A stretch of DNA of 64,000 nucleotides, from NCBI GenBank assembly GCA_024704765.1, contig JAKMXF010000029.1:1-64000 (forward strand), in the 5' to 3' direction. The DNA comes from Oopsacas minuta (taxonomy: Eukaryota > Animalia > Porifera). The translations under genes were made by a program, and so were the position numbers. Each line of letters opens with the position of its first letter. Positions within the stretch are counted from its first letter, which is position 1. Below, piece after piece: positions 5,952 through 19,162 of the stretch. The notes beneath the pieces were generated by a model that saw only the letters and a program-made list of their open reading frames with translations, searched no databases and was not told where the DNA came from.

Positions 5952-6134
5952 CGGCCTGGTAACAAAAGTACCCAATCACATATCTATCGCACATATTGTA
6001 ACTGCATAACAGTATAAAGATAAAGTCGTAGATTCGATAATTGTAAAAAAATATAGTCATTAACATGACAATCCTCTAAAACTCTAAGCTCACTTATGGT
6101 AATCATGACAAAAATACATTTGTGATATAAATAT

Positions 6135-6974
6135 TCAAGATGTTTTAGCCAAACAATTCCCTGTTAGTTTTGTTTGTATAGGTGCTGGGATACATGTTAT
6201 TGTACTGTTCCAACTGGTACTTCTACAAACAAGACTTCCACTTCTCATTTGAGTTAAGCAGATTATACAAAATATATGGTTACAAAAATCGCATTTTATC
6301 TCATTACACCCGGATTCATGCTCAAGTAAGGAACAACAGTTAGGACAAGCCCTTACTTGAGGAAACCTCACGATATTACCATCTCTGTCTTTGAACTCCT
6401 TCATTGGGGAAGATTTTAGTTGTTTGATCTTCTCTTTACTACAAAACTCGTTACCACAGTTTACTAGGCCATTCCACTCTCCAAGACAATACCAGCAGAA
6501 GCGAAATGGTTTTATCGATGTTTTTGTGCAAACAATACAAGTAACTTGAGGATCATCAGGTTTTATACGTTGAGTGTAACTTTGGCATCTGGGACACTGT
6601 TGTATATCCTGACTTAGACAAGCGTTGACTGAGAGTGCAGTTGTTAGAAATTGCTTTTCTTGCTCATCAGGTAGTCCAAGTATTAATATATCATCAACAT
6701 CGAGTAGAGTTGTGCAGGAAGCACAGCTAATTTTGTGTTTTAGATTGTTTATTTGTTGCCAAGCATGATCAAGTATATCATCTGGACAGATGTAATGTCC
6801 GCATTTCAACCTCAGCCCCCCTTCATCTGAACAGATACAGCACTCTCCATTAGGATGAGGAAATGTTACCGTCCTAGTCTCATCTCTGAGCCCAATGAAG
6901 AAATCACAGCCAACTCTAACATTACACAATGGAACATTCAGAACCTCTAAGGCGCACCTTGTTGCTCCTGACAT
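6135..6974 (-). CDS. RBR (RING1-IBR-RING2) E3 ubiquitin ligase, copy 1; possibly the last exon of a Ubl-RBR gene
   Basis: RING1 CCIC..CGHYICPDD..CASC, IBR CPRC..CIVC..FCWYC..CGNEFC, RING2 CPNC..HESGCNEIKCDFCNHIFCIIC with the catalytic Cys in GCN. AG acceptors lie immediately 5' of the ATG. Confidence 0.92.
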   Translation of the reverse strand: MSGATRCALEVLNVPLCNVRVGCDFFIGLRDETRTVTFPHPNGECCICSDEGGLRLKCGHYICPDDILDHAWQQINNLKHKISCASCTTLLDVDDILILGLPDEQEKQFLTTALSVNACLSQDIQQCPRCQSYTQRIKPDDPQVTCIVCTKTSIKPFRFCWYCLGEWNGLVNCGNEFCSKEKIKQLKSSPMKEFKDRDGNIVRFPQVRACPNCCSLLEHESGCNEIKCDFCNHIFCIICLTQMRSGSLVCRSTSWNSTITCIPAPIQTKLTGNCLAKTS

Positions 6975-7420
6975 GCTAACTTTTAAATATCAAACAATCA
7001 TTATAATTCAATACACCGTGTTTCCCTGAAATAAGCGTCGGGTGTTCTCTTTCAAGAAATACATAAGCGCTGAGGCGCTTATTCAGGAAATACAGAGCAT
7101 ACAGTAAACTTACCTTACTGATGTCATATGTCATAGAAGGTATCATTATAGCAAGGGTCTAATGTTGAAAGCCATATAGGCTGAATCTGTGAGGGAGGGA
7201 GGGGTACAGCCGCAAGAAATACTTTGGGAAACTTGGTCTCGAGAAGCTAATTGCTTCATGCAAATTGGTCACGGGACCAATTATGTAGCAGGAGTACAAT
7301 GGAATGCTTTAGAGTAGTGTGTGAAAATAATATTTTCAATTATTTGAAGAATGGTGGGGATATATGTCTATATTATGTAAACAATAGTATATCACTACCA
7401 TATACTAATTGATAACGTCA

Positions 7421-7612
7421 TCACATACCTCCTGGTAGTCGTATTACCAGCATTATTGTACTATTATTAGTAATCCCATAATCTTGTGCATTCATCACAA
7501 ATCCATTTCTCATTTCTTCAAGCTGTTTACCAGCATACAACAAACGTTGGTGTTCTACTTTAATTCCACACTTAGCAGAAATGTCACTCTTTAGTTTTCC
7601 AATAGTGTAAAC
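7421..7612 (-). CDS. Ubiquitin-like domain exon (Ubl-1) ending in RLPGG-M-stop; N-terminal exon unresolved
   Basis: After acceptor tattttag (phase 0): VYTIGKLKSDISAKCGIKVEHQRLLYAGKQLEEMRNGFVMNAQDYGITNNSTIMLVIRLPGGM*. Aligns to ubiquitin ...[37 protein letters not shown]. 192 nt. Not in the ORF track. Confidence 0.9.
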   Translation of the reverse strand, partial: VYTIGKLKSDISAKCGIKVEHQRLLYAGKQLEEMRNGFVMNAQDYGITNNSTIMLVIRLPGGM

Positions 7613-9129
7613 CTAAAATAGCAAACGCTACATTCATGACAGTATCAGCTCATCCATTATTTTAGACATTAAACAAAAACAAGAATTCGTCTTATGCATG
7701 GATTCATACCAATAAATTCATTGGTCGCACAATTATCTTTGTTTTTCAGAGCGACACTAACATACTTGCCGACTTGAGTGAAGAACAAAAGAGGGACATT
7801 ACGGGATGTTGCATTTTTACAATAGACGGACTACAAAAAAATCGGGATAATTGTGGTTTTTGGCAAGTTTCAACTGGACATTAGCCTCTAAACATGTGGG
7901 AAAAGGCGGGAAAGTCGGCAAGTATGCCATAAAATTATTGTGAAAAAAAACAGAGGACAAAAATAGAGTATTGAAATTGGGTAGGTAATTGGATAAGTTA
8001 TTCTAACTGGTCATATGAGATTGTTAGATTAGTTAGGTTTCTAGTTTCTTACCTTCAATTCTCCCTTTTCGATGTTAATGGTATACACCTTTGTGCTCAG
8101 TCCCAAGATAAATATTGTGTCCATCTCCATCTTTAACTTTATTCAATATTTTAGGTAAATACTCTTGAAAAATCTAAGTAGTAAGTAGTACTCTTAAATC
8201 AGAAGATTAAATTAAGCCAAATGGAGCGTATAATAATTCTTTTTTTGCTCCTCATAAAGTGTGAGTGTTTGTTACGATATATTTCATTAATATTTGTCTG
8301 GTTTACTATTTTATCCGATCAAATGAAATAAATTTGTGTTGTTCAAATTCATAAATAGATGAGAGAGTTCGGAATACATATATATGTCCAAATATTACGA
8401 ATCAGAACTATGAATAAAGGTGTTAACTCCAAAGCTTCAAAGATATTTGCGGATTACATATTTTGTGGTTGACATGATTATCCTCTATATTATTAAACTC
8501 AATTTGTGTGCTTTGTCTTCTTATTATTATAATGATGGGGAAGATGATCTGCGTATAACATAGGGAATAACATACCCTTCTGTTTACGATATAGGAAGAG
8601 TATACAATTACATTGGGGTAATCGAGTATGCTGATTCCGATCTTCACACTTTCGAATTAATCATATGTAAATTTATTTGTTGTTTTTATGAATATTAAGT
8701 AAACAAATTGTTGAAATATTAATTTATTAACCAATTATTTAGTAAATCATCTACTTTGAAGGGGTACTCTGGGCTCGTCAAATTATTGGGGGGCGAAATG
8801 AGACTCTCGCCCTCCTTAGAAAGTATTGGAGAGGCGACCGCCCCCCTTGTCCCTCACTAGCAGTTGAAACCAAAACTCTAGCATCAATTTGAAAAATGCG
8901 AAAAGGTGTGAAATCTTGTAGCTAGAGATTTGAAAATGTTAAATTTGAAATATACATACTCGATTAGCCCTTACTAGCAGTTGAAACGAATCACTAGTAT
9001 TATTTTAGAAATAAGGTGTGAACTCTACGCACCCAATTACTCCTGACAACATGTTGAAACCTCCTAATCTCTATCTTGCTTCTGAATTTACATAGAAAGG
9101 TGTGAAAATATGATTAATCCCAAAAAAGG

Positions 9130-9296
9130 TGTGAAATATTCGCTTTAGAAATTCATACCAGAGGTGCAAATCTTCGACCCAAGATTATTTATTTGTGTAC
9201 CAATTTTCATGTTAATTGGACCACTAAATTTCCTGGAAGGACGGACGTCGCATATCGTCCAATGCCATTAGGGCATCTCCCTATAGGAGCTAAAAT
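9130..9296 (+). mobile_element. Non-autonomous Helentron-like repeat end (family C)
   Basis: The terminal motif GCCATTAGGGCATCTCCCTATAGGAGCT preceded by GGAC-type short repeats recurs at about 12560-12830 (-) and 56520-56795 (+). Class assignment is an inference. Confidence 0.45.
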
Positions 9297-9584
9297 TAAG
9301 GCGCGTAAAACCCTGGAACATTTATACGACTTATCACGATTGACAATTGCGTGGCTCAATACCAGAGGAGTAGACAAGGTGGCACAAATGCGCCACCTAT
9401 TTGTTACATTCCTCCTATTTCGCTGCACTTCTACCAAACATGCGCCAGTAATCTGCCAAAGCTGTCTACTCCACTGCTCTATACTATTATTATTATATTA
9501 AATCCCTAGCAAATTGACAAAACATTTTGATAATAAAAATTGATCAAACAAGATTAATCATTAAATTATAAGATGTGATACCAT

Positions 9585-10319
9585 CTATATGTAAAAGTCT
9601 GATTTTATACAACATAGACAAAAACATAGGCGAAATTTATTAGGATTACGTTTGGATTGATAGGGGATATCCACAATTGAATTGCCCTTCTGATAGTCAT
9701 CAGTAAAAGTTTGAACAGGCGGATCAGTATTCCACTTTTCATGTTCACTGTTGAGCTCGTGTTGTGACTGAATTTTCTCATTAGGATCAGACGGATATTT
9801 ATCAGGTTCTGAGCCACAGAAATTGGGGAACAGTCTACAAAAGTCAATATTCTTCAGGTTGAATTTATTACTGTCTAGAGCTAGCTGTTTCCTTTCGCTT
9901 TCACTAGCATCAATACTACCAATAGTATCTGTACACTCATGCATAAACTCATAAACTCCACGTAGAACTGCTGTCACTGAGTAAGCAGGTTTCCATTCTT
10001 CAGGATGAAAGTCACTCAGACTGAAACAGATTCTCTTATTCACTTTGAATCTTCCGTTAGGAGTCAGAAATAATATTTTAGGAGGGGCAAAAGGGAAGTT
10101 GGGAGGGAATACAAGCTTCCCATGATATACACCGTCCTCGTAGGGACTCTCCTTCTTACCCTGAATGGTAAAATGCCAATCTAGAATATCATCTTCATTC
10201 GGTGCTACTTGAATACCAGGAATTGGATCTGACAGAATCAGTTTTATATCTCGATTCAGTCGCTTTGTTGCTCGAGACAGGTGGTATTGTAATCTACACT
10301 CATCATCTGTCATGTACAC
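9585..10319 (-). CDS. Ubiquitin-conjugating enzyme E2, UBE2J/Ubc6 family, intronless
   Basis: ATKRL..D; ILDWHFTIQGKKESPYEDGVYHGKLVFPPNFPFAPPKILFLTPNGRF; active-site region RICFSLSDFHPEEWKPAYSV, typical of UBE2J1/J2/Ubc6 (PNGRF in place of HPN). Confidence 0.92.
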   Translation of the reverse strand: MYMTDDECRLQYHLSRATKRLNRDIKLILSDPIPGIQVAPNEDDILDWHFTIQGKKESPYEDGVYHGKLVFPPNFPFAPPKILFLTPNGRFKVNKRICFSLSDFHPEEWKPAYSVTAVLRGVYEFMHECTDTIGSIDASESERKQLALDSNKFNLKNIDFCRLFPNFCGSEPDKYPSDPNEKIQSQHELNSEHEKWNTDPPVQTFTDDYQKGNSIVDIPYQSKRNPNKFRLCFCLCCIKSDFYI

Positions 10320-13300
10320 GATGTACTAATGGAAAAGCAAGCACTATTGTTAACCCGCCATAAATAGTGCAACTTTTTGTAATTGTTGAATTCACATAGT
10401 AACATGCAACATTATTGCATCGTGGATGATGGTTTGAGAAGTACTGAAGTGTGTAATACAGTCAGTAATACTCAGTGTGTTAAAAATTAAGAAGTCCATT
10501 TCGCGAATAACATAAAACCATAATTATTGGGAAAGATAATTAATATATGCTCTTATAAAAGTAAAATCTCACGCCATTTTAATGAAGAGATGCTAATTCT
10601 TACTCCTTTTTAGGAGAAATCTCACGGCTTGGTCAGACGCCGCACCAGGTTGGCATATGTGATCACCTGATGACCAATTTTTCATCATTCTAATCACGAA
10701 TATTATATGTACTACCAGGGGCGTAACTATGGGAGGTGTCTCCCAATTTTTGAACATGAAACATTCTTACTTATAGGATGTGTTGTGTCAAATATGCATA
10801 GGAATCAACCAACAAGTTTATTATTACGCCACTAATGTTTTGAAATCTCAAGACTCAGTATGCTTGTTTATTAAATTCCCTGCACATTGGATATTTCTCT
10901 GAGCATTTTTAGAGAGATCGAACCTTTTGATTGGCCGATATTTCGCTCGTAATATTAATTTAGAGAGAAATATTTGTGTCCAGTTATACCCTGGAGTAAG
11001 AAATAATACAATTGTTCGTACTTTTCAATTTGATATTCAAAGACCAAAAGGAAGGAAATATCAAAGATTCAATTGGCCCCCTCATTAAGTGATGTGCTAC
11101 TCCAATATTTTCATTTTGTTACGCCTCGTGGACCACCTATCAGCTGGATAACTACCTCCCTCTAGCTAAGAGATCGACAATTAGAGAGGAAAATGTTTCT
11201 AGGCGGAATTACTTGGCCTTTTATCTGGGTGCGCCCAGAGCACCTCCAGAGATGTTGCTCAGAGTGTTACTGCTTGCTCTGGGTGTGATTGCATTTTGAG
11301 AAATAATTTACAGAAATAATTCGAATTTTTAAAATTTCGTAATACAAGCTATCGCTACAAATGTTGATCACTTGGAGTTTATGGATTATACCTTGTATAT
11401 TCTGAACTAGCCCACTTCATATCCAGGGGGTATAATCTGTCCTAGGACACAATAACCTCGGGTATATTCTGGCCTAGCCCAGACTATACCTGGGGTTAAT
11501 TTAGTCTAGCCCAGATTACCTCCATAGGGAGGGGGTGGTTAATCTGGGTGGGGAGGTTAATCTAGGCTGTTACACTGGGAGTGTCACATCCCGGAAATTA
11601 GGCACACTGGTAAATGAGTCAGCAGCAAATATTAAATTTCTTCAGAAAACTCTCCGTTTAGTTACATGGATTAGGGAAGCACAAATTTTATGCATGAAGC
11701 CACAATATTGAATGATTATTCGATCACTATTAGCACTAGCGCATGATACTGCTAATTGGTTTCACACTTCTGCTGTCAAGTGTGTGCCTATATATCAACG
11801 GTGCATACAGCTTACATTGAATTTTCATTTCGCTATATAAAGGTGAAATTCAAACAAATGCTTGACCATCATGATTCAATATTCTGTGATTTACAAAGCC
11901 AAATATGCAACAAACCACTAGTTTGAAAATCTTCAAGAAAATTATTTGTTCCGTTCCTTGAATTATTGACTATAAATAACTGCTAACCTAGTACCTATGA
12001 AGAAATGTATACCTTTGTTCCTCTAATAGAGCTTGAATTATTTGAATAATGGATAACATCTACATTTCTGGAATGGAGGGAAAGTCTAAAGTATTACATA
12101 TTGAAACACAAAAGATTCAGGTACGTGTACGTAATAACTATTCATGTACTTCTAAACTACCTGATCATTCAACTCAGGCTGCCTCTATACCAAGTTAGGC
12201 GAGTGTGGTCAGATTTGTTGTCCTTCCTGGAAAATATCATATGGTTGAACGTGAATTCCAGTTTGGTTAATTGTAGAAACTACTAGAAGGTAACTAATGG
12301 TTGTACTGTTTACTGTGTGAACGGTGTAAACTAACTCGTAGCTCTTTTACATATATTTGTGTCTACATGCATTTCCATCAGACGAACATTACGAACATCG
12401 CATCATTCTTTTGTAAATAAATACTACGTATCCGAATTGGATTCACAGATTATCTCTGTTTTAGGGCTTTTGAAGCGAATTTCATGATGGGTTAAAAAGT
12501 TTTTCGAATTAATTATATTGATTGCTCTAATTTTGCAATTTGGATTTGTTTCATTTTTAGTACAGCTCCTATAGGGAGATGCCCAACGGCATGTAAGAAG
12601 TCCGACATCCATCCACACGGCCATACGAAATCTATCAGTCTGATTCACATGAAAATGTGCACAAACATACATTTAGGTAGGAAATTTGCACCTCGGTTAT
12701 AATTTTTCCTAAAGTAAATATTCACACCTTTTAGTGATTAATCATATTTTCACACATTTCTATATACAATTCAAAAGCATGATAGAGATTAGGTTTCAAC
12801 ATGTTGTCAGGGGTAATTGGGTGCGTAGAGTCTGATTTTGAGATTTCGAGAGTCTGAAAGTTACAAATTCACAGATTTATCATATGAATAATCATATTTT
12901 CACACATTTGCATATTATTCAAAATCATGCTAAATATTTCGCTTTAACTATAAGTAAGGGGTAATCGAGTATGAAGATTCCAATTTTGACATTTTCAAAT
13001 CTATATCTAAATGATTTATCATATGATTAATTATATTTTCACACCTTTTTGCAAATTATTCAAAATCTTTTAACTGCTATTAACCGATTATGGCGCCAAA
13101 GTGTTACGTTCGTGATGAGAAGGAACACTAACATTTTACCACTTCGTTTTAACCAATTCCCGCGCCAAAAACGAGATTTAGTACCTTTTGACGTCATAAA
13201 ATCACTCATTTTCTGGCAGTATTCGGTTAATAGAAATTCAGAGGCGAAATCTCTGCTGTCCAAACAATTTTACAAAACCTACTCCTGTCCGATTCTTACC

Positions 13301-13690
13301 TGAAAACCCGTTAATTGGGACTTTTTCTTAAATTTCCCTAGAAAATTGCCAGAATTTTATATTCATTGTTTTAGAATTTTATTAGAAATATATTATTAAC
13401 TTGCGCGCTTCGCTTGCTAGGTCGCTGCGCGACACCTTAGCGCCTCAGGTTAGGTTAAGAAACAAAAAGGGTGATAATGATGTCATAATTTCGTCATAGG
13501 TGTGAATTTTCGCCCAAGACTCGAACTTGTCCGAGCCAGGCCCAAAATACCCCTGTATGCCAAAAAAGCCTTGAGGGTCTTTCAGTTTCTTCAATCAATT
13601 CAAACATGTATATTTATATACATGGATTAAGCAGTGGCGGACTACCCAATAGGCAAAGTATGGATTGCCTAGGGGCCAAAACCCCTAGTC

Positions 13691-13819
13691 CAGTGGTTTC
13701 CGACCTCATAGTGGTCCAACAGGATCTCAAACCTTGCATTATGGTCAATGGGAGGGGGTCCACAGTACATAGCCAATCTATTATAGGTGGTCCATGACTG
13801 AAAAGGTTGGGAAACACTA
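13691..13819. mobile_element. hAT (Charlie/Buster-type) MITE, 129 bp
   Basis: TIRs CAGTGGTTTCCGACC and GGTTGGGAAACACTA. Perfect 8-bp TSD CCCTAGTC at 13683-13690 and 13820-13827. Confidence 0.88.
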
Positions 13820-14888
13820 CCCTAGTCAATTGAAAACTATTCTTTTCGCTCTCCTCATGACTTACTATATTTACGGCTTGCTAATCAAATAATTACCAAA
13901 ATAATATACAACATTTCAATTTATCTAGTGTAACCAGAGGGTTTGGTCTTAATCCAGCAATAAGCACTTATTACAGTAAAACCTGAATACCTACACAATA
14001 TTCTTCCATGAGTATATGTATAACTCAGTGTTTAGATTATTTATTTAATTTGTCCTCTGCTACTGTTGTATGATAGTGATTTTTTAAAATAATTGAAGAG
14101 TAGTTCCGTGACTTAATAGACAATTCGATTCAGCGTACTTGAGATACGAGATATACCTATACTGGCTGTGTTGCTGTTTAGAGCATATATTTTGAAATTT
14201 GGGTAATTTGTTTTCTTTATTTTCATATAAATTACAATAAATTTACATATGATTAATCCAAAAGTGTGAAAATCGGATTCAGCATGTTCGATATATTTAG
14301 TGAAATTTATTGAATTTTATTTACTTCCTTAATAAATACGATAAATACATAGTTATGCAACAATTTCAAAATTGCATACCGTAAATCCTTTCCTTGACAA
14401 CGGACAAACAAACAGACAAACAAAATTGAGATTTAATAATATATTCCACGGAAAGTTATTACATCCGAATAAACTGTTCGTTATCCACTTGGGAGACGTT
14501 GTTAACCCAAATGACTCTCATTGAGATACAATAGAACTTGGACGCGGACATAGTAAGTTAGCAAACGAAGTACGTCTTATCCGAATATTCTTCCTATAGA
14601 TACGATTAGTACAGTACTGGGATAGAAAATCCGATTTGGAGAAAGGTACGTACTAACCGAATGTACGTCTTAGCTGGTACTTACTAACTGAATTCTACTG
14701 TAGTAATTATATGTCACATCATTGATAACTTATGATGCAGACCTAAACTCCCAAATTTCTCTGATTTTCTGGGAAATTATCAAATGTTTTCATATAAATG
14801 GAACATTTCTATGCAGTGAGAGATCCACCTTTACAATTCAGATTTTTTGAATATCCTTAAATTCATGTGTTTGTTTCCTCTAATCTAG

Positions 14889-15092
14889 ACTTTTAAGATA
14901 AAGGAACTGAAAGTGAAGGTGAAAACAGTTACTGGGATTGATGTAGAGAAACAACGTTTGCTCTACGGCTCCAAAGATCTCGAGGAAAGTCATAATGGGC
15001 AAGTGATGACATTTGAAGACTATGGTATACATGCTGGTGCCAGTATCGTTCTGGTAGTTAGACTACCAGGTGGTAACAGATATTTTCACTAA
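14889..15092 (+). CDS. Ubiquitin-like domain exon (Ubl-2) ending in RLPGG-NRYFH-stop; N-terminal exon unresolved
   Basis: After acceptor ctaatctag (phase 0): TFKIKELKVKVKTVTGIDVEKQRLLYGSKDLEESHNGQVMTFEDYGIHAGASIVLVVRLPGGNRYFH*. Ungapped alignment to Ubl-1 with the same intron position. Not in the ORF track. Confidence 0.9.
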   Translation, partial: TFKIKELKVKVKTVTGIDVEKQRLLYGSKDLEESHNGQVMTFEDYGIHAGASIVLVVRLPGGNRYFH

Positions 15093-16310
15093 CTTAGATT
15101 ACTGACATACTTATAATATCTTCCATTATTAGTATTTTGTTCACATCCTGAAAGTTATTACATATAATTTGATCGGACTGATCAATTAGTAATTAGAGCT
15201 GTTTAATTAAACGCCTTCGCTTGTTTGGTCGCTGCCTGCCAGTTTGTGTCTCAGAATTATTTTAAGTGTGAAGCAGATAAATTTCTTAATGATTTTAGTC
15301 GCTACACGATGGGATATACTCAGTAGTACGTCCTACGTGCCTCGAGTTAAAAATTAGCGGAAATTTTAATTTTATTAACTATGGTCAATCCAATTACATT
15401 TAATAGCCTTCTGCCGTAAGACTGGAGCTGCGTGGCTTTTGGTTAGTAATCTGGGCATTTCGTGCTTCGAGTATTATGAAATTCTATAATCTTGAAATTT
15501 CGGAAAATGTAATTTTCATGGTGGCGTAATAATCCATAATGTCATGGCATTTAGCATATTGATGGTCCTGAGATTTCAAATTTGAAATTCTTATGATGTA
15601 TATTGATGAACAGTGGCTAAGCAGTGGTTAATATGTGATTTTTCGAAATTTTAAAAGATGACAATGACTTCATAACTTTGTCATAGGTGTGAATGTTCTT
15701 CCAAGACTCGAATTTGTCCGAGCCAGCCATAAATACCCCTGTATGCCAAAGATCAGCCCTGGGGCCTTCCAGGTTCTTCAATCAATTCTGGAATTACAAA
15801 TATATACAGTTGGAATAAATGGAGCACTTTTATAAGCGGGGAATTTTGAGTTCACATTCATTCATTTTCATAGAAACGAACCTCTCTAAGCTAGAAGTGG
15901 GGAACAGGGCATACTTTAGAGATAATTATGTCTCATGCCTTTGAAATTTACCTCTATAAAAGGGGAATTCTACGCTACAATTTCTTGAATATTCAATTTT
16001 TGAGCTAGATTTGGAAAAAATTCATGTATTTTAGTATTTTCGCTATGATGAAAACATCGTTGGGTTTCTCAGTAGAAAATTTCTTATAATTTTGGATTTT
16101 CAACGAACTACCTTAGGGCATATTAGAATGCCTAATGTAAGTCGATGAAAATCCAAAACCAGCCCTGGGGTCTTCCAGGTTTTCAATCAATTCCGACATA
16201 CAAAAATACACAGTGCAGCCTCTATAAGGGGCCTCTATAAATGGAGCACTTTTATAAGCGGGGAAATTTTAGTCTACATTCATTCATTTTGTATCTTCTG
16301 ATTACTAGCT

Positions 16311-17135
16311 ATGGCAGATCTTGACCCTTTTGAAAAGAATAAAGTTTCTTTCAGTGAAGCTAGAGGCTGTCAATTGCTATTCGTTAAATTTAGGGACCAA
16401 GAAAGAACTGTATCTTTCTCACATCCTAATGGTAATTGCAATACATGTGGTCATCCTTCTGGTCTTCAAATGAAATGTGGTCATTTGATTTGCCCAGACG
16501 ATATCCTTGATAAGGCCTGGCATGATATCGGAAACATGAAGTTTGAGATTAGTTGCACAGAATGCGAAAACATTATTTTAATGAAGGATATATTCAAATT
16601 TGGATTGCCTACTCTAGAAGAGGAACAATTCCTAACAACTGCAATAACGACAAACTATTATGAAAGTCAGGATATCCAGCAATGTCCTCAATGTAAGACT
16701 CTTTGTCAAAGAGAAAAAAAGGATTCCCCACAAATATTTTGCGTAATTTGTCCTCGAAGAGGAAAAGATTATTATACATTTTGCTGGTATTGCCTGAGGG
16801 ATTGGAAGAATACAGATAGTCATCAAGTCTGTGGAAATGAGAAGTGTTTGAGAGAAAAGACATTAGCTTTGATTAATTCTCCAATGAAGGATTTTAAAGA
16901 TCATAACGGAAAAGTCGTCTCTATTCCAACTAGGAGAGCTTGTCCCAGAAAAGGTTGCCATACTCTCATCGAACACACACAAGCATGCAATACTATGACG
17001 TGTTGTAGTTGTAAGAATGATTTTTGTTTCATATGTCTATCTCAATCAAGTTCTGGGAGTCTAGCTTGCAAAAGTAAAAGTTATAATGCCACTGGAATCC
17101 GCTGCAGCCCAGCTCCCATTCAAACTAAGTTTTGA
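16311..17135 (+). CDS. RBR E3 ubiquitin ligase, copy 2; possibly the last exon of a Ubl-RBR gene
   Basis: RING1 CNTC..CGHLICPDD..CTEC, IBR CPQC..CVIC..FCWYC..CGNEKC, RING2 CPRKGC..HTQACNTMTCCSCKNDFCFIC. Colinear with 6135-6974. Acceptor ttactag ends at 16308. Confidence 0.92.
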   Translation: MADLDPFEKNKVSFSEARGCQLLFVKFRDQERTVSFSHPNGNCNTCGHPSGLQMKCGHLICPDDILDKAWHDIGNMKFEISCTECENIILMKDIFKFGLPTLEEEQFLTTAITTNYYESQDIQQCPQCKTLCQREKKDSPQIFCVICPRRGKDYYTFCWYCLRDWKNTDSHQVCGNEKCLREKTLALINSPMKDFKDHNGKVVSIPTRRACPRKGCHTLIEHTQACNTMTCCSCKNDFCFICLSQSSSGSLACKSKSYNATGIRCSPAPIQTKF

Positions 17136-17855: not shown

Positions 17856-19162
17856 CGGGGGCACTCAATAAGTTTTGAGCCTGACTATGTTGCGGCTCTT
17901 ATATAAGTAAACCATTACTTGTTTCGAATAAACATGGGATAAATATACTTCGCTGAAAATCTTGTAACTTTATCTTGTATACTTTTCAGATAGCAGTAGT
18001 TTTATTATCTATGGATTCCTTAGTTACCAAATCCTCAATACAGTTATCAAGACGTGATATTCGTGCGGTAATACTTTTTCAGTTCCAACTTTTGAAAACA
18101 ATAAAAGAATGTCACGAAAATTTCTGTACAGCCTTTCCAAATAACAAGGTATCTGCGGCAACAGTGAAAAGATGGTACAGAGAATTTAAGTGTGGGAATT
18201 TTCATCTTGAAGACCAACCCCGCCCTGGACCACCCCCATACGCTGTTACAGAGGGAATTGTTGAGTCAATTGAGGACATGGTGATAGCAGACCCAAATGT
18301 TGCATATGAGAGGATTAAGCACGAAATTGGCATTTCATCCGGGGCAGTGCACACCGTTTTACACCAATCACTTCAGCTACGTAAACTTTGTGGCCGTTGG
18401 ATCCCACATCAGCTTCATCCTGAGCAGAAGCAGAATCGAGTGAAATGTTGCCATGAAATGCTTAAAAAATTCAACAATGGCAACAGTAGAGATGTTTCCA
18501 AAATAATAACTGGTGATGAAACATGGATCTATCAATATGACCCAGAAACAAAGCAGCAGAGCCGTCAATGGTGTGAAAATGGAGAAGGTCCCCCAACAAA
18601 GGTTCGCAGAACTCAGTACACCAAGAAACAAATGTATACAATTTTTTTTAATACAACGGGTGTTAAAACTGTTGTACCTCTTGAACCTGGTAAGACAATT
18701 AATTCAACCTAGTATACAGAGAGTTGTTTGCCTCTAGTCATAAATGCAATAAATTTACAGCGTCCTGGCACAGGATTAAGGGGAACTTTTTTGCACCACG
18801 ATAATGCCAGTTCTCATACATCAAAAATGACACGACAATTCATTGAAGAATCAGGACTACATATTTTGCCATACCCCCTTTATTCTCCAGATCTAGCACC
18901 CTGCGACTTCTGGCTCTTTCCCAGAATAAAAAAATACCTTAAAGGCAGAAATTTTTCATCGAATTCTGAACTTGAGGGGGCCCTCAGAGAAGTGATCGGA
19001 GACATCAACGAAAAGGAATTTAAAGAAGCTATTCAAGGTTGGTTTAAACGAATGAACAAGTGTATTCAAGCTAAGGGATGCTATTTCGAACAATTATAGT
19101 CAAAATAAATATAGATTGATGCTTTTTGATACTTAGGCTCAAAAGTTATTGAGTACCCCTCG
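17856..19162 (+). mobile_element. mariner (Tc1/mariner, D,D34D) transposon, full length
   Basis: TIRs of about 28 bp, CG-GGGGCACTCAATAAGTTTTGAGCCT and CGAGGGGTACTCAATAACTTTTGAGCCT (reverse complement). TA TSD at 17854-17855 and 19163-19164. About 1.3 kb. Confidence 0.95.
18011..19099 (+). pseudogene. mariner transposase with a single in-frame stop
   Basis: Motifs WIPHQL, TGDETW, HHDNAS-x-SPDLAPCDFWLF (34 residues between the 2nd and 3rd Asp). ORFs 17975-18712 and 18728-19099 share one frame, separated only by TAG at 18710-18712. Confidence 0.93.

Follow-up and report, generated by a model that had tools for sequence, protein, structure and literature searches.

Does the locus described here encode ubiquitin-like modifiers side by side with their own ligases and conjugating enzyme, each as a separate protein, or are the apparent genes exons of a fused ligase? 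It lies between positions 6135 and 17135 of a 64,000-nucleotide stretch from the glass sponge Oopsacas minuta (assembly GCA_024704765.1, contig JAKMXF010000029.1; this whole stretch is the window, and its coordinates are those of the record). It holds two genes for ubiquitin-like proteins (Ubl1 and Ubl2), two for E3 ligases of the RING1-IBR-RING2 type (RBR1 and RBR2), and one for an E2 conjugating enzyme. The explanation that we favour, and to which we give about an even chance, is that the locus is a cassette of separately translated Ubl precursors, their cognate RBR ligases and a de-anchored UBE2J2-type E2, and that it represents the split form of a wider family in which Ubl and RBR are fused in one protein.

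Five separate genes are listed at the locus in GenBank, namely two Ubl, two RBR and one E2, with products of 89 residues ('Ubiquitin', P0038, copy 1), 91 residues (ubiquitin family, copy 2), 279 and 274 residues (the RBRs) and 242 residues (the E2, P0039). The annotation was produced with Braker/Augustus and RNA-seq hints, and genes coding for fewer than 100 residues were retained solely with transcript coverage (PMC10280926); ubiquitin or IBR proteins receive no mention in the O. minuta genome paper. An earlier, sequence-only reading of this DNA had called the two Ubl exons hidden, which they are not, as both are already annotated along with the RBRs and the E2. Its placement of them at 7612-7421 (minus strand) and 14889-15092 (plus strand) is borne out by Pfam ubiquitin matches at both positions (E 9.5e-12 and 1.4e-9), and in both units the Ubl lies upstream of a same-strand RBR. 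The E2 also sits between the two units as described, although they do not both diverge from it: the minus-strand gene order is E2, Ubl1, RBR1, with the E2 co-oriented with unit 1, and solely copy 2 is divergent, on the 5' side of the E2. The features are as follows.

6135 to 6974, minus strand: RBR1 coding open reading frame (ORF), 279 residues (ORF; Pfam IBR/IBR_1; RNA contig 6086-6981, depth 451).
6979 to 6981, minus strand: acceptor-like AG at 6981-6980, with exon start at 6979, 5 nucleotides upstream of the RBR1 ATG (sequence; RNA contig end).
6975 to 7420, minus strand: spacer of 446 nucleotides from the Ubl1 stop to the RBR1 start (covered by an RNA contig of run X4).
7421 to 7612, minus strand: Ubl1 exon 2, ending VIRLPGG-M-stop (Pfam ubiquitin; GenBank protein P0038).
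7613 to 8052, minus strand: Ubl1 intron, 440 nucleotides, GT..AG, phase 0 (spliced joint in X4; sequence).
8053 to 8130, minus strand: Ubl1 exon 1, 26 codons from the ATG (sequence).
9585 to 10313, minus strand: UBE2J2-like E2, 242 residues, intronless (Pfam UQ_con 4e-21; PDB 2F4W; RNA contig 9584-10327, depth 168).
10325 to 10327, minus strand: acceptor-like AG at 10327-10326, 12 nucleotides upstream of the E2 ATG (sequence; RNA contig end).
12049 to 12120, plus strand: Ubl2 exon 1, 24 codons, with the donor GTACGT after it (sequence; fits the 91-residue GenBank model).
12121 to 14888, plus strand: putative Ubl2 intron, 2768 nucleotides (from the exon 1 donor, the exon 2 acceptor and the 91-residue model).
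14889 to 15092, plus strand: Ubl2 exon 2, ending VVRLPGG-NRYFH-stop (Pfam ubiquitin; sequence).
16311 to 17135, plus strand: RBR2 coding ORF, 274 residues (ORF; Pfam IBR; predicted structure).

The case for separate modifiers begins with the ends of the Ubl proteins. Each Ubl is encoded in two exons, and the features that the sequence-only reading had reported for the pair are present in both, namely the ending V-[IV]-R-L-P-G-G and a shared intron position (phase 0, with GT donors after 8053 on the minus strand and after 12120 on the plus strand). After the terminal RLPGG there is a tail of one residue (M) in Ubl1 and of five residues (NRYFH) in Ubl2. In an alignment of Ubl1 with ubiquitin, residues 3-76 are aligned at ~40% identity with two insertions (4 and 5 residues), and the equivalents of Lys48, Arg72, Leu73, Gly75 and Gly76 are retained. 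By sequence, the Ubls have two of the marks of a conjugatable (type I) modifier, a beta-grasp ubiquitin fold and a C-terminal Gly-Gly followed by a putative removable tail, here of 1-7 residues.

With the window, eight loci from other assemblies give nine loci with 13 copies of Ubl exon 2 and 11 pairs of Ubl and RBR; one copy, a pseudogene beside RBR fragments, was left out, so that 12 intact ones remain. All 12 intact copies have the Gly-Gly end, and in all 12 a stop codon follows 1-7 codons later at differing positions (the null probability of a stop within seven codons is 0.40 per copy), while the dN/dS (ratio of nonsynonymous to synonymous substitution rates) of the Ubl exon is 0.12-0.45, which indicates purifying selection. 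Both Gly codons vary synonymously among the 12 copies, and those of the second Gly include GGC, GGG and GGA; the second Gly thus serves as a codon and is more than the G|GT of a splice donor. The Gly-Gly is thus under selection as a pair of amino acids, and the possibility that it is a by-product of a G|GT donor was rejected as a sole cause on account of these codons. The Arg74-to-Pro change, to which the sequence-only reading had given weight, is not a fixed feature, since across the family the tail varies most at position 74 (R-[LV]-x-G-G).

The pairing of Ubl and RBR extends well beyond the window. More than 30 close RBR relatives with 47-74% identity were found, two of them in O. minuta and the others on large contigs of ENA assemblies, and the Ubl is upstream of the RBR on the same strand in all 11 pairs. 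Ubl and RBR divergence co-vary over these pairs (Mantel r 0.80, p 0.0002), so the units have been copied as blocks and have diverged together, as had been proposed from the window alone. The two window units share 48-52% amino-acid identity and represent separate old subfamilies that both have counterparts in other assemblies. A recent block duplication of the window units was considered and rejected, as there is no DNA-level repeat and the proteins are ~50% identical. When the Ubl exon was used in a homolog search, the sole match was the window's own protein. At one of the loci (L008, ENA assembly) an Atg3/Atg10-type E2-like gene (Autophagy_act_C) and a TRAF/MATH gene at 7392-10135 adjoin a Ubl-RBR array.

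Both ligases have the order RING1-IBR-RING2 and are matched by Pfam IBR models. The predicted catalytic Cys of RBR1 lies in a GCNEIKC motif of RING2, and across 29 RBR paralogs the zinc-ligand Cys residues and the catalytic Cys (C226 in RBR2 numbering) are invariant. An AlphaFold model of RBR2, with a predicted local distance difference test score (pLDDT) of 81.6, matched structures of ARIH2, HHARI, HOIP, HOIL-1, RNF216 and Parkin in a structure search, as well as predicted structures of RNF217, RNF19 and RNF144, all at 15-21% identity; a sequence search of the PDB with the RBR gave weak RING2 matches alone. There are ~42 residues before RING1, and no Pfam match to RING0 or NZF was found. The sponge RBR is accordingly minimal, with no substrate-binding domain recognisable by Pfam or in the model, and it is distinguished by a conserved N-terminal region of 40 residues and by the C-terminal motif C-x-P-A-P-I-Q-T-K-L, of which C-x-P-A-P-x-Q is common to the fused relatives described below.

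The RNA evidence on how these genes are expressed consists of assembled contigs for one 5901-letter stretch covering copy 1 and the E2, from four runs of the same sample and one run of a related organism, all of unstated type; look-ups for transcript contigs of the window's proteins gave the genome record alone. Depth is flat and the contigs are long and unbroken in runs X1 and X3, which are DNA-like, whereas X4 has exon-like depth and is RNA-like. A joint in X4 from 7612 to 8053, with GT..AG on the minus strand, shows that Ubl1 intron 1 is spliced. One X4 contig (record 18, depth 190, unbroken over 6952-7610) carries 22 nucleotides of exon 1, exon 2, the whole spacer and the first 23 nucleotides of the RBR1 ORF, so Ubl1 and RBR1 are found on one RNA without splicing of the spacer. 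A Ubl-RBR joint from 7424 to 6979 is absent among the 15 of 62 X4 joints listed, and the contig is unbroken at the putative donor 7424.

Two contig ends point to a further splicing event. The RBR1 exon contig (depth 451) stops exactly at 6981, the A of the acceptor AG, and a lower-depth overlapping contig continues upstream; the E2 contig (depth 168) likewise stops exactly at 10327, the A of an AG, where an overlapping contig of depth 32 continues. These ends are read as branches of the assembly graph, which implies that each acceptor is joined to some other sequence ending in AG, and because there is neither a break at 7424 nor a listed joint from 7424 to 6979, the sequence joined to RBR1 would, from these contigs, be a leader or another 5' exon and not Ubl exon 2. 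Acceptor-like AGs are seen 0-19 nucleotides upstream of the starts of RBR1, the E2 and both Ubls (6979-6981, 10325-10327, 8131-8132 and 12029-12030). The AG pattern and the contig ends fit spliced-leader trans-splicing and perhaps a dicistronic Ubl-RBR transcript; in glass sponges, spliced-leader trans-splicing has been documented and operons have not (PMC10282587, PMC7986045). The locus also lends itself to testing polycistronic or trans-spliced expression in these animals. The E2 RNA contig ends at 9584, one base past the stop, so its 3' untranslated region is apparently almost absent, and the RBR1 contig ends 49 nucleotides past the stop. In the run of the related organism (X5, organism B), RBR1 is present at ~96-99% identity (6209-7030) and the E2 at ~92% (9637-10424); nothing at >=90% was found across Ubl1 exon 2 and the spacer, an absence that is uninformative at the low depth of this run.

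The same pairing of domains is found in other animals as a single protein. A profile of the 29 RBR paralogs was compared with 1.84 billion proteins; 65 representatives reached E<=1e-30 and 568 reached E<=1e-10, many of them 300-400 residues long with the RBR starting from residue 60-140, and nine of ten relatives scanned have an N-terminal ubiquitin domain in the same ORF. In 37 of the 39 Ubl-bearing representatives (at most 50% identity), the Ubl ends in an internal R-x-x-G-G after which 230-340 residues follow. Pro is absent directly after this internal Gly-Gly, where Ser, Ala or Gly predominates; equivalents of Arg72 and Leu73 are retained across phyla, and position 74 is variable. Named members with the fused form include Acropora corals, the bivalves Mya, Ruditapes and Mercenaria, and the brachiopod Lingula, and many other fused relatives are full-length ORFs in Logan run assemblies. 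Two loci of the fused type, L011 and L012, have tandem fused genes and an upstream Ubl exon 1 and lack the 5-residue insertion. The suggestion that the modifier is lineage-specific is contradicted by the single-ORF Ubl-Gly-Gly-RBR fusions in Acropora, bivalves and Lingula; what appears, from the sequences sampled, to be restricted to the sponge clade is the split form with a linked E2. On the simplest reading, the fused form would be ancestral and the gene would have been split exactly at the Gly-Gly in the sampled glass-sponge clade. Ubiquitin-ribosomal-protein fusions are cut after Gly-Gly, and by analogy a split at this point would be tolerable if the Ubl-RBR fusion were normally cut there. 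No description of the Ubl-RBR family, including its 'DDB_G0292642-like' label and a zebrafish-type cluster name, was found in the searched literature. In an Atlas cluster of similar proteins, most members come from chordates. One ENA contig protein of 352 residues (P0174) has two Ubl units before the RBR, the first ending RLPGG and the second without Gly-Gly, in a tandem layout like that of ISG15 or FAT10.

The E2 has its best match in human UBE2J2 (PDB 2F4W, E 6.5e-51), followed by Ubc6 (E 4.6e-45), and the segment around its catalytic Cys aligns with the UBE2J2 active-site region. The earlier assignment of this enzyme to the UBE2J type therefore holds for its UBC core but fails for its C-terminal part, where the UBE2J tail anchor is absent (the maximum 19-residue hydropathy past residue 150 is 0.63, compared to 1.9-3.1 in anchored homologs) and the protein ends in the Cys-rich CFCLCC. 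The window copy (C-terminus at 9585-9650) and the UBE2J2-like paralogs P0040-P0047 together show the Cys-rich ends CFCLCC, FCCFK, CFWCCK, CPCIS, CSCI and CCLI, and a hydrophobic anchor is retained in E2 paralogs P0048, P0050 and P0053. The sequences suggest that the Cys clusters are candidate lipidation sites and that lipid anchoring may replace the helix.

Linkage of the E2 to the units is seen in the window and recurs elsewhere. Four of the nine loci, namely the window and three others (L003, L006 and L007), have an E2 on the same strand at a distance of at most 10 kb; the window and L003 share the order E2, Ubl, RBR, and in L006 and L007 the E2 directly adjoins the units. There are ~15 E2 paralogs with 52-78% identity, six of which are on contigs equal in size to RBR-bearing contigs, and E2 paralogs probably share contigs with RBRs and have co-expanded with them. 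The E2 is also expressed in the RNA-like run X4, where the E2, Ubl1 and RBR1 all occur at depths of the same order. It has to be considered that the E2 is an incidental neighbour, UBE2J2-like genes having been tandemly expanded in the same repeat-rich regions with no work in common with Ubl-RBR. The E2 is missing within 10 kb in five of the nine split-type loci and in both fused-type loci, and no continuous RNA joins E2 and Ubl1, the depth in X4 being zero over 9343-9539, so the E2 is a separate transcript. An incidental association nevertheless seems quite improbable to us against the shared strand and order, the direct adjacency at two loci, the number and contig placement of the paralogs and the matching level of expression.

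Several further observations weigh against the cassette as proposed. The window holds no E1, and no protease or conjugate was seen; UBE2J2-type E2s are not, to our knowledge, known as partners of RBR ligases; and no E2 is nearby at L011 and L012. The other points concern splicing. A donor-like G|GT is found in the Gly codons of 11 of the 12 Ubl copies, in ~8 of 11 pairs the AG closest to the RBR ATG on its upstream side is phase-compatible, and the O. minuta paralog LOD99_11374 is modelled by GenBank as a spliced fusion that would read RLP-E-T-M. As the RNA evidence consists of contigs of one run with 15 of 62 joints listed, it also leaves room for a spliced Ubl-RBR form, at least as a minor isoform. 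These splicing features are what would be expected if the Ubl exon were cis-spliced in frame to the RBR from a donor in the last Gly codon, giving a Parkin-like fusion whose Ubl would stay uncleaved as a regulatory domain and in which Gly-Gly followed by a stop would never be a protein end. Such an arrangement is further favoured by phase-compatible AGs 2-5 nucleotides before the RBR ATG in both window copies and in L001 (with a window-L001 shift of exactly 3 nucleotides), by the end of the RBR exon contig exactly at the acceptor, and by the fact that the relatives are true fusions.

We nonetheless regard a Parkin-like fusion as unlikely. An obligate fusion is hard to reconcile with the second Gly, which would be lost from the spliced product and yet is conserved, in part as the GGC, GGG and GGA codons that destroy the donor there. 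The RBR start Met is aligned in all 11 paired ORFs, and in three of the 11 pairs an in-frame stop lies directly before it; the RNA contig runs on unbroken past 7424, the RNA-guided annotation has separate genes here, and the fused relatives keep the Gly-Gly, unlike Parkin and HOIL-1, whose Ubl domains are not known to have a Gly-Gly end. Separate Ubl and RBR proteins in O. minuta are thus favoured by the Gly-Gly with varied codons, the early stops, the aligned RBR Met, with its preceding stop in three cases, and the annotation. None of the outcomes that the sequence-only reading had named as counting against it was found; the E2 is syntenic at three other loci and expressed in the same RNA run.

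If the cassette reading is correct, the Ubl would be freed with an exposed Gly-Gly, in O. minuta by trimming of the short tail and in the fused relatives by cleavage after the Gly-Gly, in the manner of the ubiquitin-ribosomal-protein fusions. An E1 would then activate it, possibly UBA1, given that the Arg72 equivalent is retained. The neighbouring E2 would take over the Ubl and hand it to the cognate RBR, where a predicted E3 thioester with the RING2 Cys would form, and from there it would reach substrates, each RBR being the probable cognate minimal E3 directly downstream of its own Ubl. Alternatively, the Ubl may be released and never conjugated, acting non-covalently, for instance by serving as chaperone to its own RBR or activating it allosterically (compare phospho-ubiquitin on Parkin or NEDD8 on Ariadne), with the Gly-Gly as a processing site alone. 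The one-to-one pairing and joint divergence of Ubl and RBR would suit such a role, as would the minimal RBR, and cleavage alone explains the internal Gly-Gly of the fusions equally well. Split genes, however, need no cleavage from the RBR, yet all 12 intact copies keep the Gly-Gly and short tail of a conjugated modifier; the Arg72 and Leu73 equivalents are retained across phyla, and a dedicated, co-expanded E2 adjoins the units. A purely non-covalent Ubl therefore strikes us as improbable.

The cassette can be compared with several known systems. A precedent in layout is given by the ubiquitin-fusion precursors (UBA52, RPS27A, FAU/FUBI-S30 and polyubiquitin), in which a unit ended by Gly-Gly is N-terminal and is joined to a protein, as in the fused relatives, or followed by a short tail and stop, as in the sponge, and in which there is again no Pro after the Gly-Gly. 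The in-frame Gly-Gly joint to a downstream protein holds in 37 of the 39 fused relatives and not in the window; moreover, the partner here is an E3 and not a ribosomal protein, the Ubl is ~40% identical to ubiquitin with two insertions, and cleavage is putative. Parkin and HOIL-1/RBCK1 share the order Ubl then RING1-IBR-RING2, and their RBR fold is matched in Foldseek (E 1e-4 to 1e-3), but the identity is 15-19%, RING0 and NZF are lacking in the sponge proteins, and in O. minuta Ubl and RBR occupy separate ORFs with stops, on an unspliced RNA contig in the case of copy 1, one paralog being modelled as a fusion. The ISG15 system, with its E2 UBE2L6, its E3s and its tailed precursor, resembles the cassette in having a ubiquitin-derived modifier with an LxGG end, a short extension and, here as candidates, a dedicated E2 and E3; it differs in that the sponge Ubl is a single beta-grasp domain and not a tandem, and in that the modifier gene here is fused to, or physically linked with, those of the enzymes. 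With UBE2J2 and yeast Ubc6 the E2 shares its UBC core and aligned active-site region, whereas in the window E2 and several paralogs Cys clusters stand in place of the C-terminal transmembrane anchor, and ~15 paralogs lie beside RBR genes. Ariadne, RNF217, RNF19 and RNF144 are the best sequence and structure matches to the RBR core, at 16-21% identity, and do not account for the sponge N-terminal region or the C-x-P-A-P-I-Q-T-K-L motif.

A broader proposal, which we put forward tentatively and hold to be considerably less secure than the cassette itself, is that an unrecognised animal modifier, present from sponges to molluscs, is encoded fused or adjacent to its own RBR, and that glass sponges have split the genes, recruited a de-anchored UBE2J2-type E2 and accumulated dozens of co-diverging pairs that may act as private modifier-ligase channels, possibly in recognition or defence. 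New animal ubiquitin-like modifiers are rare, and for a modifier that travels with its own E3 and E2 no described counterpart was found in the searched literature. The internal R-x-x-G-G across phyla and the natural fission exactly there in glass sponges offer a clear and cheap test of cutting and charging. With Arg74 replaced, trypsin would leave an LPGG remnant on the substrate Lys and not GG, so that such conjugates would escape standard diGly proteomics and yet be distinguishable from ubiquitin.

A mariner/Mos1-type transposase (HTH_48 and a partial DDE), split across two ORFs, is present at 17975-19099, just downstream of RBR2, and transposon ORFs interrupt several Ubl-RBR units at other loci (L005, L006 and L007). 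Further along the window, positions 21887-42115 hold an intronless family of multi-pass membrane proteins of ~360-395 residues, whose C-terminal blocks are near-identical.

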